DNA of 64,000 nt, taken from NCBI RefSeq assembly GCF_964204645.1, contig NC_134030.1:7172778-7236777 (forward strand), given 5' to 3'. Of this stretch, positions 1 through 25,800 are shown one piece after another. The position numbers and the translations under genes were made by a program. A model generated the notes under the pieces. The model was not told where the DNA came from, searched no databases, and saw only the letters and a program-made list of their open reading frames with translations. Within the stretch, counting starts at the first letter, position 1, and every line of letters begins with the position of its first letter. The stretch is from Tubulanus polymorphus. Lineage: Eukaryota > Animalia > Nemertea.

Positions 1-1
1 G

Positions 2-68
2 ACTGACTACGGTCAATGCTTCGGGTTTAACCACGATACGACGAAAGACATTTACAGCCAAGGGACTG
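2..68 (+). CDS. DEG/ENaC (ASIC-like) channel, internal exon (gene continues 5' of window)
   Basis: Reads TDYGQCFGFNHDTTKDIYSQGT, matching the DEG/ENaC 'T.YG.C(Y/F)xFN' motif; donor G|GTAAGA at 69. Confidence 0.9.
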
Positions 69-160: not shown

Positions 161-342
161 GAGCGGCATATGGCTTGAACCTGTTGATCAACTTAGAACA
201 GTACCAGGACATGGAAGGAGAACACAAATCTGCCGGACTTAAAGTTCTAGTTCACGATAAATATCAAGGGATTCGTATGAAAGATTTGTCGTTATCTGTA
301 CCACCGTCGATGAGTGCATTTATCGATGTTCGAGCTAAAAGG
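161..342 (+). CDS. DEG/ENaC channel exon (palm/beta-ball)
   Basis: Acceptor TACAG at 160. Reads (G)AAYGLNLLINLEQ...SAGLKVLVHD...SVPPSMSAFIDVRAKR, containing the 'GL.L.L' and 'G.KV.VH' family motifs. Donor GTAAAT at 343; phases fit the neighbours. Confidence 0.92.
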
Positions 343-580: not shown

Positions 581-773
581 ACGACCGAATTGCAAGATCC
601 GTACGGAATGTGCATAGAAAACGCCCAAAGACAAAGTATGTGTCAACATAACTGCTATATACGGGTGACGTCATCAATATGCAAATGCCTGCCGTTCTAT
701 GCCGAAGATAATACCGCAGGTCTATCATATTGTACTTTAAAACAACACAGAGATTGCTACCAACTACAACTCG
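581..773 (+). CDS. DEG/ENaC channel exon (Cys-rich thumb)
   Basis: Acceptor TTTCAG at 580. Reads TTELQDPYGMC...CQHNC...CKCLPFY...C...C, the thumb Cys pattern. Donor GTAAGG at 774. Confidence 0.92.
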
Positions 774-857: not shown

Positions 858-2361
858 CGAAAATGCGTCGAAATCAAACAGTTTGCGGCACTAGTGAATG
901 TCCACCACCTTGTCAACAACTGACGTACGATTCACGAATCAGTTATGCGGCTCTGTCGACGAGCATGGCGCAGGAAATGGCACAGAAGGAAAAAAACAAC
1001 CTGGACATGTTAGAAGATTACAAAATGGCCAGAGTAACTCTATACAATGCTGATTCACACCTCGAGGATGCGAGCTTTAATGCGGTTTTCAATTTTGTTT
1101 CGTCACTACAAAAATCTGAAATGGCTATAAAAAACGTTAGCGAATATCTGGATAATCAAGACAAAATCATCTATTCCGATAAACTCTACGTCGCAAAAAA
1201 GCTCAAAGAAATGTCAATGTCTGTTCGAGCGGAGAAAGGGAATTATTTACGCTATACCGACATGGAAAAAATCTCCACGATAGTTATTCCGGGTTTGTTA
1301 AACTTTAAAACGGCCCTTAACGAGACCCTAATTTCAGATTTCAAAGCCATAAACGATTTCCTAGCAAACTCGTCCGTTGTATCACACATGAATTTTCAAG
1401 AAGCGTTTTCAAACGTTGCTTTCGTATACAAAAATATGCTTCACACGGCCATATCGACTCGGCTAGCCTTTCAGAATTTATACGCCAATTTCAAAGAATA
1501 TACAACTTTCGTGAAGTCATTGATCGATTTTCCAATGATGATTGGTCACATTATAAAGTTTCAAAAATCATGTGACACATTGATTACTGCCTGCAATGAT
1601 TCTAAGGCAACGTTTCGCGATTTTGGCAATAGTCAATCAAGACGGGACTGGGACAATTTCTACAATCTAACCGGTCTGATTCCTGGCATCATCGATGAAT
1701 TCGAAAAGTCTGCGTTTGATCTGAAAACCAAATTGACTAATGTTGTTTATGAATTTGATGATCTTGAGAATTCATTGGAGACCTGCAAAAAAGAGCTATT
1801 CAACTTGTATTTGAAATACATTACGATCTTATATGAAAACATTATCAGCGCACCTATGAAATATGGTGCTACTAAACGGATGATTTTCCCTACACCAATT
1901 AACATAGTAACATTGATCGAAGACATTGGAAAAATAAAGGCGAATGTCACTCGACGGCTTAAAACAATGATCACGCAGAAACAGATTTCTGTGGCAGAAT
2001 TAAATTCTTTGATGCACGATAATAAAAACCTACTGGAGAAGTTCCCGCTAGATCTACAAACGTTCAAGGATAATTCGTTAAAAGTGATATCCTCGGTCGT
2101 TAAAGATATGGACAAGGATAGCCAACCTTCAAGAGACTTCATCGGAAAGATGCTTAGTTATGATATTCCTGTTGAGACTAGAACATCATTGGAGAAAATT
2201 AAGAAAAAACTGCAGTACATCGTCGACGAAAATAATGAGCTTACCAGAACTATGAAACAATATCGCGATGCGCAAGCTGAATTGACGCTTGCAACCTCAC
2301 TATTAAACGGTCATATGACAAAGTATCGGAACAGCATTGTCATTGGTGAAGACTTTGTAGT
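858..2361 (+). CDS. DEG/ENaC channel giant exon: end of thumb, beta10, then about 470 aa helical segment in the knuckle position
   Basis: Acceptor AAAG at 857. Begins AKMRRNQTVCGTSECPPPCQQLTYDSRISYAALS (family 'C.ppC....Y....S') and stays open for 1504 nt. The phase-2 donor GTTAGT at 2362 restores frame with the next exon. Confidence 0.85.
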
Positions 2362-2450: not shown

Positions 2451-2542
2451 AAATAATTACGTATACGTTTCAGTCTACTTCAGAACACTGAGTTTGGAGA
2501 CGTTGAAAAAGTCGAAAGGATATCTGTGGTTTTCGTTAGTTT
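2451..2542 (+). CDS. DEG/ENaC channel exon (beta11-beta12, start of TM2)
   Basis: Acceptor TTTCAG at 2450. Reads NNYVYVSVYFRTLSLETLKKSKGYLWFSLV, matching 'N...L.IYF..L.Y........Y....L'. Donor GTAAGT at 2543. Confidence 0.9.
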
Positions 2543-2823: not shown

Positions 2824-3053
2824 GTGATATAGGTGGTTCTGCCGGGCTTTATTTAGGCGCATCTTTATTGGCTATTGCCGAGGTCATCTGGTTTTTCGGA
2901 TCTCAACTCGTGTACCGCTTGAAGCGGCTGCACCGTGTGCGAGCTGATAAACAAGAGGAACAATATGGCGTTGCCGACACGAAAAGCGGATCTGGAGCGA
3001 ATCGATTTTGTACAAATCGAAATAGTATCAATACCATCACATCTCCAATTTAG
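2824..3053 (+). CDS. DEG/ENaC channel last exon (TM2 with GAS selectivity filter, C-tail)
   Basis: Acceptor TTTAG at 2823. Reads (C)DIGGSAGLYLGASLLAIAEVIWF...TITSPI*. AATAAA at 3101-3106. The six exons sum to 2268 nt, in frame. Confidence 0.93.
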
Positions 3054-4230: not shown

Positions 4231-6764
4231 GAATGAGTGAAAATCGCACAGCGATCACGAGTCCGCAGTGCGCGAGGTCAGACTGTGAATGTGGAAGAAA
4301 AACGACAGTTTGTTCGTGTGAAGAAACGTGCGTCAAGATGGGAATTTGTTGCAAGAGTTATGCCACGAGTTGTGCCACTAACACGACCACGGCAACACCA
4401 TTTCCGTCGTCCTTCGTAAATTATGTCCTATGCAGCTCATTTCAAGTCTCCTATTTCAGTAACACTAATCTAGGGAACTATTGGTCAGTTTCGCGGTGTC
4501 CGCCCGAAAGTAATCGGTTTGATTCATCGATCAAACGACGGTGTGAACACCCGGTCGAAATCGGCTGGAATTCATCGATCAACGATTTAGTCGAGTATAC
4601 GCCAGTTTTCTACGACGATCTTCTCTTTCGTAATTATTTTTGCCTTCGCTGCCACGTGGAAGACATCGACTCTAACACCTTGACACCGGTCCATATACGC
4701 TTTCATTCTCTGGACCAGAAAACGAAATCGCTCTCTCTACGCGACGATGGTCGCCTTTTAGAGAGGTTACGCGTTGGTTCGTATGTGCCAAAAATTGAGT
4801 GGAAATACTCCCCAAACCACGAAATACAATGTTTTGATCCGATGAATAAGAAACAGATCGTAGAATGCCTCGATTCCAAGAGCCGTTGGTACACGACGTG
4901 TCAAAGCTACGTGGAGCCCATTCACATTAAAAACAAAAATAACCTGGTCTTTAAAAAAAAACACTGTGCCATCTGTAACGGCTACGAACGTAGTGACTTC
5001 GGATGTGCTTTCTCGAGGGGTTTTTGGATAAATTATGAAAGGCCTGTTTTATCCGTTCTATTCGATTTATCCCGACCGATGTTGATAGAGACTCAACTGA
5101 TTGATTCGAACACCAATCGTCTCGTTCAAAAGTTACCGAATTGCCAAACGCCGGGAACAGTCTATAATGCACTGAACGGTCAGTGTTCAGACGTCGAAGA
5201 ATATAAAGAGCAATTTCCCTCGGTGGAGCCTAGACGCCTGATTCATGTCGAATTATCCGCTTCGTTTAATTGCGCATCCGATGTCACTGCAATCATTTGG
5301 TTGACGGATAAGATGAAGGATTTCTTTTTCGAATCGTTTAAAGCGAATTTAAAAAACCTATCGATATCAACTCGGATCGATGAGAATTGCTGTTCATTTT
5401 CGATTGACCTGTCATCGGCCTTTTATACCGAAACGACTGAGAAAAATCTGCTCGACAGAATGACCGGTGCCGTCAATGCATCGAATGCTTGCTGTAGATT
5501 TGACGATTCAAAGTTTGAATTACGAGTTAGGAATCATCGTTACGCGGACCTGAAAGGATGTCCACCAGAGAAAGTAATCGAGCTCGTTGATGATACGAGT
5601 TACACGATCCTAGATCAACAAGGCATCGAATACGTGACGTTCGTTTCAGCTACTAACGCCACCAAGCGGCGTACCCAGTGGCTACCCCTACGTAAAACAT
5701 CGGGCGTATTTCTGGAATATGTCGTTCGACGTGGGGAAGTTCCGCAAAGATACTTGACTATTTGTGACAATCGATGCGATTCAGAGGTTATTTTCAGTCG
5801 AGAATTCCTTCTTTCGACCGAGCAGAAACACCGACTGACGACCGCTGATGGTTTAGACGTACTGTTGAGTCCTTTCCAGTTTCATTTAGCAGGAAATTCC
5901 GTCATCGTTTGTTTCGATACGATCAATTTGACGAAGGATTTCGATACGGACGTTGAAGAGATGATAACTGTTGTAACAAGTGCGTTATCACTGATCGGAC
6001 TGGCAGTTCTGCTCTTAACCTACACGGTGTTTCGATCGCTCCGATCTTTACCGGGTATAAATCTCATGCACATGTCAGCATCGTTATTTTTGGTCATGCT
6101 TTTATTCAACACCGTCGTATTTCAGTCATCGGTACTATCTCGTCCGGTGCTCTGCGCAGTAATCGGCATGTTAGTTCACTATCTGTGGCTCGTCGTGTTC
6201 TTTTGGTCGAACGTAATTGGTTACGACACATACCGCACGTTCGCTACACCGGCCGGAATCGAGACAGGGACCCGCGCCGACCGGATGACTCGTCTACGGG
6301 GTTACTGCGCGTATGCGTGGTTCATGCCAGCTGTTCTCGTCGGTAGCTGCATCGCGATCGCGTACACGCTTCCGCATATCGGTTTCGTGTACGCTAACGC
6401 TCACGTATGTTGGATTTCTAACTATACGCAGCTTCTGTACACATTTCTCGTTCCTATCGCCGTCATATGCGCGGCTAATTTAACTTTCTTCGTTCTGACC
6501 ATTCAATCGATCTGTCGCGCGAGAAAGGAGTCGGAAATGACAAGAAATACAAGACGACCCGATCGTAATTTTATCCTCATAACAAAGTTGTCTTTGATAA
6601 TGGGTTTGAATTGGTATTTTGGGCTGATCGCGAGTCACGGTAGTGACACACTCAAATTGATTTATACCGTTTTCAACGGTTGGCAGGGATTTTTGATTTT
6701 TGCTTGCTTTATTCTGAGAACTCGCATATTCAGATTGTACAAAAGCTATTTCATCACACACTGA
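4231..6764 (+). CDS. Family-B-like (Methuselah/adhesion-like) 7TM GPCR with somatomedin-B-like Cys-rich ectodomain, exon 2
   Basis: 843-aa ORF. N-terminal CSCEETCVKMGICCKSY (SMB-like). 7TM with family-B motifs LRSLPGINLMHM, C...G.L.HYLWL..FFW, YCAYAWFMP, CWI and GWQGFLIF. No GPS motif seen. AATAAA at 6897-6902. Confidence 0.92.
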
Positions 6765-22800: not shown

Positions 22801-25800
22801 AAATGTAATTTGTTGTACGGCAAGTGAATTGGGCTGATTAGTCACGCGATGGCACTGGGTAAACCTTCATTACAGATGCGCTTTTATTACGCTAAGTTAA
22901 CGATTTACCCCGGCGGTGCTGGGTGTATCGGCCGGCGTAAAAACCATCGTCTCATCGTCGTATAGCAGCGGCGATGACCGAGTCGCGCCGAAAATAACGC
23001 TCAAATAAAGACGACGAACGAAACTGGAATGACCCCAGACGTTTATGGTTCGCGTGGAAGGAATTATACGTCTAACTGTTGTCACCGGTGAACATGAGCT
23101 GAACAGATATCGGTGAAATTTAAGATTTTTCCGCGTCTCCGGCGCAATTATTAATCGTGTAATGATTTGAAGATGGCAGCCGTACCGGACTATCGACATA
23201 AACGACGGTCGTAAATGGTTTGCGAGAGAGGTCTGCATGCGGTATTTTATTGAAAATTAATTTCTCTGAAGGCTTCATTTTTCAGTAATGAAATCCGAAC
23301 TCTTTCGCTTGAAAGAAACAAACAACAAGAGTAATGATAAAAATTTGGAAATCATACGTGCATAGGGATGGGATGGGTGCTTTGTAAAGAGTTATCCGTA
23401 CAAAGCATTTGAATAATTTGTTTACTGGATAGCCCTGTAATTACAAATGACAGCATTCTGTAGTTCTAATTCTGAAAAAGCGTATATGATTTAAAAACAT
23501 CTTGTTAGGACTCCTCTAGGGTTAGTGTCAAGTTTCTTCGAAGGTGCTGTTATCGCATGCATCTACAATCAGTTCATGCTTTTAGGAAATTATGATGAAT
23601 TAGTAATAAGCTTGTTTTTTATGTTTATTGACCTGGGTCATTTTGAGCAATTTTAGGTAGGTTGGTATTGGGTGTATTCTAAGGATTGAGAATCATTTTG
23701 TAACTCGGGAGACACGATCCCAGCGGAGTCCCTTAGTTTTCGACTGCCTTTCGACAACGCAGGAATGATCAGAAGATTCATTTAGTAAACATCGGTAGGA
23801 GTCGAAATGCTCTAGGAAAGGTATCTTTCTATCTGTGAGTGAAGAAAAACGAACTAATAATCATATTAGATAAAACGACCTTAATCCTGAAAAACAAATG
23901 GCTCGTTTTCTTAAAAAAGAAAAGATGCTGTAAGTAAAGTAAGTATATGATTAATAATATTTCAAATGCTAAGTGATAAATGTTCAGTATAGATATGTAT
24001 GTATATTATACAACTAATAAAAGGCGAGGTTAATGTCGCGAAAAGGAAGTGCAACATATTTTACTGCTTAGTACGATAACCACGCTCAAACGTGGTGAAC
24101 AGATGATAATATAAAAACCCACTATTTACAAATTAAAAGAAATCTAAAATCGAGAATTTATTTATTGAAACAATCTAAAATATAAGAACACGATGTTTCG
24201 ATCTCACACTAGAGATCATCGTCAGGTGATTCACACCTGATTTCACACCTGACGATGATCTCTAGTGTGAGATCGAAAGGTCGTGTTCTTATATTTTAGA
24301 TTGTTTCAATAAAAAAATTCTCGATTTTAGATTTCTTTTAATTTGTAAATAGTGGGTTTTTATCTTATCATGTTTTACTGCTGTTGACGTCTTGACAACA
24401 GAGCGAGTGGGCGAGCGAGCCCTCTGCCCGAATAACCCGATGTACACCTATCAGAAATCTGTGATATTCACATTTATCTAGCAAAAGTCCCACGGAACGT
24501 AAGGACCATAGCCGAAGAGTATGGATAAAAATCAAAGTGAGTTTTTTTAAATTTTCATTTTTATATTTCAAAAAGCTTCCCTTTCTTGTTCACAGTAATG
24601 GGTGTGACCGAAAGCCACAAGCAAACTGTGTGTGTATCTATCATACGTTGCTCTTCCCTTATCTATAAAAAATAAACAGATCTCCGTAGAAATCCGATGC
24701 TATATCATAACGTGAGTTTAATGGCAAAGCTCAAACGAAGCCTAATGCGAATGACTGTAAACCTCTGACAGGGTGTTTTTATACCTGAAAGCGGTCTGAA
24801 TTCCGACTCTGAAAAAAAAACATATGATAATAAATAATACATTTTGAGGATAAATAATACATTTTTGTTGTCGACATTAGAGAAACGTTACGAGACAAAA
24901 TGGTCGTCCCCGGGATCTTGTTGGCTCGGCGCACTCGTCCGACATCAGTTCCCTCTCCCTCTCACCCACTCGCTCCCTCTCTTCCCCTATCTCTCCATTT
25001 TCTATTCTATTACGACTCATGCCGACGGAGGCACGCTTACTCGTTTTTTCCCCGACGTGTTTCAATTTCACATTTCGACTGAGACGCAATCGTCTTCCCA
25101 TCGATTAAACATGCCGTCACGCATGAGCGAATATAGCTACACGAATTGATAGAATATTCGTCTCGGACTCGAAAGAGAGAGAGAGAAAGGGAACAGTTTT
25201 CACGCACTTTTTATGCCCGACTGAACACGCGAATAGACTGAGAAATTTTTTAATATAGACAAGACAAGAGCGTGTATATTCAGTTTTGGATTCATTTTCT
25301 ATCGGTTATTATACCATTTCGGTAATAGATACTGGTCGACTCCACCGATTGCAGATATCTTCTCTTTATAGCGATTCTTGTGCTTGAAACTCAGCGCGTT
25401 CGGACAATAGGTAATTAAGCAGTGGTTCCATTGTACTACGCGTTTTGTCCGGTTGGAAACAAATTGTCCGAACGACGATTGTTTCATCGAACCGGCTTTT
25501 GACAACCAACATGGCCGACTAACTGGATGTCACGTGATATGATGACGTCAATGCAAGACCACTATACATCCGAGATTTCCGAATGTATTAGTGACTTATG
25601 AGTGACTTAGATTCCGACTGACTGCAGAGTCGCGCTTCCTAACCCCGCATAGCGCTGACCACGCAAAACCTACTCATCTTTCCAGTTTTGTCAACATTCA
25701 GACAGTTAATTTTTCTATGGATCATCGGGAAGATATTTTTCAATAAACGAACGGGAAAGGGATTCGTGGCAGATTGTGTCAACACGCGACCATGAATGAT

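Follow-up and report, generated by a model that had tools for sequence, protein, structure and literature searches.

A predicted all-helical domain of about 445 residues inserted in the knuckle of a tandemly duplicated DEG/ENaC channel subunit of the ribbon worm Tubulanus polymorphus

In the DEG/ENaC superfamily, which comprises the ASICs, ENaC, the degenerins and the peptide-gated channels, the extracellular "hand" of the subunit is regarded as fixed, with the finger and the thumb as its variable parts. A DEG/ENaC gene at the beginning of a 64,000-nucleotide stretch of the genome of the palaeonemertean Tubulanus polymorphus (assembly GCF_964204645.1, contig NC_134030.1, called C6 below, positions 7172778-7236777 of the forward strand; this whole stretch is referred to as the window) raises the question of whether the knuckle can also be built out, and what a channel would do with such an addition. 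In the ASICs, knuckle helix alpha6 leads straight into its partner alpha7 and the entire knuckle measures ~20-25 residues, whereas in the Tubulanus channel ~445 residues lie between the two helices. It is very probable, in our judgment, that these residues form a helical domain inserted in the knuckle.

The residues are encoded by one exon of 1504 nt at window 858-2361 on the plus strand, which is preceded by an AG acceptor (856-857) and followed by a GTTAGT donor (2362-2367). The 500 codons at window 860-2359 contain zero stops, and their translation opens with ...CGTSECPPPCQQLTYDSRISYAALS and closes with ...YRNSIVIGEDFV. The N-terminal part of the exon covers the end of the thumb and strand beta10 (…VCGTSECPPPCQQLTYDSRISYAALS), and the C-terminal part reads …TKYRNSIVIGEDFV. 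The other frames, like the non-coding DNA close by, have 0.058-0.078 stops per codon, and the chance of 445 stop-free codons is ~1e-12. The exon frame is open in 10/10 close paralogs and also in more distant copies; in the same ten close paralogs the acceptor and a GT[TA]AGT donor are kept and the exon borders are alike. Given this stop rate and a frame that is open in every paralog, an open frame by chance is excluded.

A preliminary description of this DNA, made from the sequence letters, had claimed a single uninterrupted exon of this length, with about 470 residues between the beta10 and beta11 motifs that are low in proline and carry six N-glycosylation sequons and three cysteines. The splice sites and the 500 open codons fit the first of these claims, ~468 residues are counted between the two motifs, and the composition was reproduced. 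The six sequons of the insert are NVS, NET, NSS, NDS, NLT and NVT, the three cysteines of the exon are at residues 238, 245 and 309, and proline makes up 2.0% of the insert, the commonest residues of which are L/K/N/S/I. No transmembrane-like segment was found in the insert (the Kyte-Doolittle maximum over 19 residues is 1.07). Among the ten copies, NSS is retained in 10/10, NLT in 9/10, NDS in 7/10 and NVT in 7/10. The conservation of these sequons fits an extracellular glycosylated domain.

The place of the insert was determined by comparison with solved channels. The window gene was searched exon by exon, with two paralog proteins from the database, P0001 (937 aa, encoded by a copy on contig C2) and P0005, as full-length proxies. 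The best solved relatives of the core are ASIC1 and ASIC2 (PDB 6L6P, 6AVE/6VTK and 2QTS; E 9e-38 to 1e-31 for P0001), and both the ASICs and the insert-bearing channels show the same order of elements, i.e., transmembrane segment 1 (TM1), palm, thumb, beta10, alpha6, alpha7, beta11 and a GAS-containing transmembrane segment 2 (TM2). P0001 residues 12-363/364 align to ASIC chain residues 19-391/392 (phmmer; ASIC2 6L6P and chicken ASIC1 6AVE), ending in alpha6 at …SKTSAKYLEK. From residue 826/827 onward, P0001 aligns again to the ASIC chain from 390/391 onward, starting with KKFNKSEKYISENILVLDIFF, which is alpha7 followed by beta11. The two blocks of P0001 thus abut in ASIC (at ~391), and the alignment leaves 462 intervening P0001 residues without an ASIC counterpart. 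At its borders the insert retains both knuckle helices, with STSMAQEMAQKEK before the insert and the nearly invariant alpha7 motif YRNSIVIGEDF after it.

Because the two aligned blocks abut in ASIC and alpha6 and alpha7 are both kept, the domain sits in the alpha6-alpha7 loop, and by this alignment ~445 residues are inserted within the knuckle, between the two helices. The preliminary description had placed the domain "in place of the knuckle," which is wrong, as both knuckle helices are retained on either side of it. The likeness to ASIC is a modest match (E 9e-38) that concerns the core sequence only and does not imply proton gating. In ordinary DEG/ENaC genes of the same genome (loci L035 and L036), ~50 residues lie between beta10 and beta11. 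The first of these, at C3:5626000-5629500, is an intronless open reading frame (ORF) of 544 aa with a beta10-beta11 segment of ~55 residues; being conventional, it indicates that the genome holds ordinary DEG/ENaC members too. No solved structure covers a segment such as the insert, as judged by sequence and profile searches of the PDB, and in the literature, as far as its partly available text goes, no description of a knuckle insert was found for any DEG/ENaC channel.

The long exon is genuine coding sequence, and the DEG/ENaC channel-subunit gene to which it belongs is intact. The gene is complete, with the HG motif, the Cys-rich thumb and the GAS pore; it starts at C6:7169493, upstream of the window, and its stop codon ends at window 3053. 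The HG motif lies before TM1 in an upstream exon (…FSNDTAFHGVRYIGHS…; ORF L011:5494-5637) that also reads …TAFHGVRYIGHS, and the TM1 exon is 88% identical to P0005 residues 47-104. At the other end, the last exon reads DIGGSAGLYLGASLL... and then a stop, and the GAS filter DIGGSAGLYLGASLLAIAEV aligns, through the paralog, to GDIGGQMGLFIGASILT of ASIC. The family profile PF00858 (ASC) matches two exon pieces with 28.1 and 26.2 bits, above the cut-off of 23.6, and others with 18.8 and 16.7 bits, at colinear profile positions; on the paralog proteins it reaches 169-272 bits (254 bits on P0001). All P0005 segments were found by tblastn, in order and unbroken, as far as the stop codon (window 3053), and the gene looks intact because every one of them is present in that order. 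Both the DEG/ENaC identity and the view that intact pore motifs speak against a pseudogene, as first proposed for this locus, are thus borne out, the former by PF00858 on several exons together with the HG motif, TM2 and the selectivity filter, and the latter by the filter, the HG motif and the match of P0005 without breaks.

The gene belongs to a family. Nine tandem copies, in both orientations, were found at C6:7105578-7175830 by DNA and profile searches of the genome, and one further close copy is located at C2:26137829-26140429. A broader profile adds seven or more divergent genes whose insert is homologous, on C10 (which encodes P0002), C6 (three sites), C8 and C4 (three sites). Every genomic match of the insert profile adjoins ASC exons, and on the evidence of these searches at least 17-18 DEG/ENaC genes of the T. 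polymorphus genome carry the insert. Measured against the window copy, the inserts of the tandem array are between 81% and 48% identical, and the insert of the C2 copy is 23% identical. Two subtypes are visible in the alignment of the close copies (alignment A1), where, compared to the window copy, L002-L004 show 78-82% identity, L006-L008 and L010 show 51-53%, and L005 is intermediate (60%). Between subfamilies, insert identity is 14-24% and similarity is unrecognisable. The cysteine pair C238/C245 is invariant in the subfamily of the window copy and absent from the distant subfamilies P0002-P0004. The RefSeq label "degenerin-like protein del-10," attached to P0002, P0003 and P0005, is an automatic best-hit name, and the other proteins are labeled "uncharacterized." Between two of the channel paralogs lies a 208-aa ORF (L011:4040-4666, minus strand, C6:7168039-7168665) that has the look of a retroelement C-terminus, with no Pfam match.

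The ratio of nonsynonymous to synonymous substitution rates (dN/dS) was estimated from the nine tandem copies, pooled, and is 0.50, 0.51 and 0.57 in the three successive thirds of the insert, compared to 0.08-0.33 in the core exons and 0.29 in those parts of the big exon that flank the insert. Across the tandem paralogs, the insert thus evolves ~3-5x faster than the channel core, and the ratios point to purifying selection on the insert despite its fast change. In the C2 copy, at 23% insert identity, synonymous sites are saturated and the frame is still open. Synonymous divergence among the tandem copies also differs along the gene, being 0.22-0.32 in the core exons vs. ~0.50 in the insert. 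The lower synonymous divergence of the core may reflect gene conversion confined to it.

What fold does the insert adopt? An AlphaFold2 monomer model built from the 10-paralog alignment has a mean predicted local-distance difference test score (pLDDT) of 79.7 and a predicted template-modeling score (pTM) of 0.64 and is nearly all helix, in line with the helical nature first proposed for this segment. The predicted helices span exon residues 66-133, 135-168, 176-212, 224-258, 274-328, 349-372, 389-420 and 438-492. The insert is predicted to be a self-folding, elongated, two-tier all-helical bundle, in which the long first helix and the last helices would make up tier one and a four-helix bundle (~124-300) would make up tier two. 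The ranges of the structural matches suggest that one bundle is stacked on the other and that the chain both begins and ends on the side of the channel. In an exhaustive VIA structure search, residues ~124-300 match generic and designed four-helix bundles with Z up to 16.3, and the regions ~88-133 and ~389-467, paired, match other four-helix bundles with Z ~12; the background for helical bundles in this search extends up to Z ~13. Lower VIA matches include bacterial four-helix-bundle (4HB) sensor domains (Z 10.9-11.5), McpZ (10.8), MakB (10.9) and Hbl-B (10.1).

Foldseek against the PDB returned no match at E<=0.001, and comparison of the insert with Pfam, PHROGs and PDB profiles yielded no sequence relative. 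A shape search of the ESM Atlas gave TM<=0.32 by query, with rows that include His_kinase/HAMP proteins, and a feature search of the same atlas found no relative of the Tubulanus insert or of the insert of locus L033, a channel locus of separate origin described below. The bacterial 4HB and double-bundle sensors (PDB 4K0D, 8BSA, 6S18 and 8F7N; Z 10.8-11.5) resemble the model in being extracellular and all-helical with both ends proximal to the membrane. Membership in the 4HB_MCP or double-bundle sensor families was considered and rejected, as there is no Pfam or profile match and the Z scores lie within the helical-bundle background, leaving a resemblance of shape only.

Lineage-specific enlargement of the extracellular part has precedents in the superfamily, at other positions. 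ENaC has a small knuckle and carries its lineage-specific extra domain (GRIP) in the finger, whereas the Tubulanus addition is in the knuckle. Among DEG/ENaC subunits, the nematode degenerins (MEC-4/DEG-1 type) have, like the Tubulanus channels, gained extracellular parts particular to their lineage. The additions specific to degenerins are Cys-rich and are located behind TM1 and in the finger, and they are not known to include a helical knuckle domain.

The position of the insert bears on what it might do. ASIC gating depends centrally on strands beta10 and beta11 and on the beta11-beta12 linker, and the upper palm and the collar formed by knuckle and finger control gating in both ASIC and ENaC. 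In the cryo-EM structure of human ENaC, the knuckle, together with the finger of the neighboring subunit, forms the top collar of the extracellular domain (PMC6197857). The ends of the Tubulanus insert would be welded, via alpha6 and alpha7, to the palm strands beta10 and beta11. With its ends fixed in this way, binding to the insert or pulling on it would act directly on gating parts, namely the upper palm and the knuckle-finger collar. The insert would most likely be a fast-diversifying extracellular module for recognition or sensing of a ligand, a partner protein or a matrix component, and each paralog would combine the same pore with a different sensor. The claim in both its parts, i.e., that there is a helical knuckle insert and that it is a recognition or sensor module that reaches the gate, seems to us evenly balanced between right and wrong.

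Several observations weigh against a sensor module encoded by the full exon. No ligand-binding family matches the insert, and its structural matches are at the level of any helical bundle. In sliding windows within the two subtypes, the ratio of nonsynonymous to synonymous differences (pN/pS) lies between 0.2 and 0.8 in most windows and comes near 1 in two, with no convincing positive selection; the fast evolution of the insert could equally reflect weak constraint. Furthermore, in the RefSeq model of P0005 (C6:7132418-7139059), 161 exon residues are skipped and the exon is ended 39 nt early.

Instead of a recognition module, the insert might be a mechanical tether or gating spring, a glycosylated rod that links the top of the channel to matrix or cuticle-like material, so that shear or stretch would tug at the knuckle and open the pore; the preliminary description had named such a tether beside a ligand- or lipid-binding antenna. 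This alternative has a known counterpart in human alpha-ENaC, where activation by shear force is reported to require an N-glycan (N511) at the tip of the knuckle, acting in concert with the extracellular matrix (10.1101/102756; PMC7958617). The six sequons of the insert, four of which are kept in at least 7/10 paralogs, and the predicted helices of 55-68 residues, which would give a long rod, are both consistent with a tether. A tether to a common matrix component should, however, be conserved, whereas no other part of the protein evolves as fast as the insert, which has 14-24% identity between subfamilies, and no known matrix-binding domain was detected in it by Pfam. We consider a tether unlikely, if still the most serious competitor to a recognition module.

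Alternatively, the insert might be an assembly or structural domain, three copies of which pack above the channel, in a common bundle or as the coiled coil considered in the preliminary description, and set the trimer partners or shield the top while sensing nothing. An assembly code would make sense among many co-located paralogs that have a near-identical core and differing inserts. The invariant cysteine pair could also form bonds between subunits; located at positions i and i+7 of one helix, the two residues point the same way, and a bond between them inside that helix is not possible. This pair is nevertheless absent from the distant insert-bearing subfamilies P0002-P0004. A single chain is, moreover, modeled as a bundle closed on itself (pTM 0.64), a mild argument in favor of separate rods, one per subunit, over one shared stalk. 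A purely structural role is rated as improbable, and the recognition module remains our preferred reading of the function.

A different kind of objection, to which the P0005 model gives rise, is that splicing removes most of the exon from the mature mRNA and leaves an ordinary knuckle. The internal donor used in that model, GTAAAC, is unique to the P0005 paralog, and the window copy has TTAAAC at this place. At the internal acceptor of the model, 5/10 aligned copies have AAA, not AG. Three copies lack its early 3' donor, the use of which would remove the nearly invariant YRNSIVIGEDF motif of alpha7, while the GT[TA]AGT donor downstream is kept in 10/10 copies. The RefSeq models P0001-P0004 retain the entire insert. 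Moreover, the open frame, the sequons and dN/dS<1 hold across all thirds of the insert in every copy, and an intron would not preserve these. With a donor that is not shared, open frames and dN/dS<1 over the full length, removal of the insert by splicing is very unlikely.

Capture of a foreign or transposon ORF as the source of the insert, or an artifact of assembly or annotation, is extremely improbable: retroelement fragments do occur nearby (the L011:4040-4666 ORF upstream, and an RVT_1 match beside the unrelated P0006 gene of another assembly), but the insert profile matches DEG/ENaC genes only in the genome and four Tubulanus DEG/ENaC proteins only among 1.84 billion representative proteins, ten independent copies have identical exon borders, there is no Pfam or PHROG family match, and all genomic copies of the insert lie inside DEG/ENaC genes, which disposes of the transposon origin that the preliminary description had named as an outcome to look for.

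Is the insert confined to this worm? The four proteins matched by the insert profile are all from RefSeq Tubulanus polymorphus, and a scan of JGI metagenomes with an insert profile (A2) gave no match. A whole-protein search with P0001, in turn, recovered long DEG/ENaC proteins from the ENA assembly ERZ25069866 and from the Logan data sets SRR23372228/9. The ERZ25069866 proteins (P0006, P0007, P0009 and P0010) are represented by an intronless 874-aa ORF in DNA of 37% GC (locus L032). The Logan locus L033 (SRR23372229) encodes P0008 and three tandem neighbors within 15.9 kb, with introns of ~50 nt and 25% GC. Like the Tubulanus channels, those of ERZ25069866 and L033 have an ASIC-like core and ~440-470 extra residues between beta10 and alpha7/beta11, and the L033 genes further resemble the Tubulanus genes in forming a tandem array and in having an intron after alpha7 at the matching place. 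The L033 insert is predicted to be helical at low confidence (AlphaFold2 pLDDT 55).

P0006 matches ASIC with E 9e-51, and its block after the insert starts at chain residue 386, in an alpha6-like stretch. With this start, the insertion point may differ by ~12 residues from that in Tubulanus. Comparison of the three insert sets (Tubulanus, ERZ25069866 and L033) with hhalign showed no similarity among them. Judged by these sequences, the inserts may be one old, fast-evolving insert or may reflect repeated use of a permissive loop.

Taken at its widest, the pattern would describe a new class of ionotropic receptor, in which a DEG/ENaC pore is gated or tuned by a helical-bundle sensor in the knuckle, with at least 17-18 receptors in the ribbon worm produced by tandem duplication and with comparable, possibly homologous, inserts in other invertebrate lineages. 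We put this forward tentatively and regard it as rather doubtful. The shape of such a sensor would be analogous to that of the four-helix-bundle sensors of bacterial chemoreceptors. If true, a folded domain as large as the remaining extracellular domain, placed in the knuckle and varied from gene to gene within a family, would represent a new attachment of a sensor to a DEG/ENaC pore. The insertion site is where work on ENaC puts a glycan-dependent mechanical input, beside the gating strands beta10 and beta11. The family would then be a natural experiment on how force or binding at the top of a channel reaches the gate, and would supply orphan receptors from a phylum that has received little study.

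The exons of the gene that lie in the window, and the features of the big exon, are collected in Table 1.

Table 1. Features of the insert-bearing DEG/ENaC gene, in window coordinates
Feature	Position	Strand	Description
Upstream coding exon, 3' end	1..68	+	…TDYGQCFGFNHDTTKDIYSQGT; donor GTAAG at 69; earlier exons placed upstream by tblastn of P0005
Beta-ball/palm exon	161..342	+	GAAYGLNLLINLEQYQDMEGEH…; PF00858 28.1 bits, profile positions 200-263
Cys-rich thumb exon	581..773	+	TTELQDPYGMCIENAQRQSMCQHNCYIRV…; PF00858 profile positions 274-337; donor GTAAGG at 774
Big exon	858..2361	+	Thumb end, beta10, alpha6, insert, alpha7; PF00858 26.2 bits, residues 3-81
Inserted domain proper	992..2326	+	Exon residues ~45-489, ~445 aa; borders transferred from the P0001/ASIC alignment to alignment A1
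Sequon NSS	1367..1375	+	Present in 10/10 paralogs
Cys pair C238/C245 (SCDxxIxAC)	1571..1594	+	Invariant in alignment A1; in one predicted helix (224-258), at i and i+7
Beta11-beta12 exon	2451..2542	+	NNYVYVSVYFRTLSLETLKKSKGYLWFSLV (opens NNYVYVSVYFRTLSLE...); aligns to ASIC beta11 in paralog; dN/dS 0.08
Last coding exon	2824..3053	+	TM2, GAS filter (DIGGSAGLYLGASLLAIAEV…), C-terminus, stop; PF00858 profile positions 433-455

Elsewhere in the window, a search of its whole length against Rfam returned zero families above the gathering score. A near-perfect hairpin was observed around window 24177-24297; at E<=1 over 23800-24700, Rfam matched it at 24177-24297 with sub-threshold long-hairpin microRNA models only, on both strands, and with none of the hammerhead families. 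An intronless gene resembling class-B G-protein-coupled receptors lies 1.2 kb downstream of the channel gene, at window 4233-6764 on the plus strand. Its single 843-aa ORF carries a secretin/adhesion-type seven-transmembrane domain (PF00002, E 1.8e-26, residues 576-822) behind a long, Cys-rich N-terminal region.

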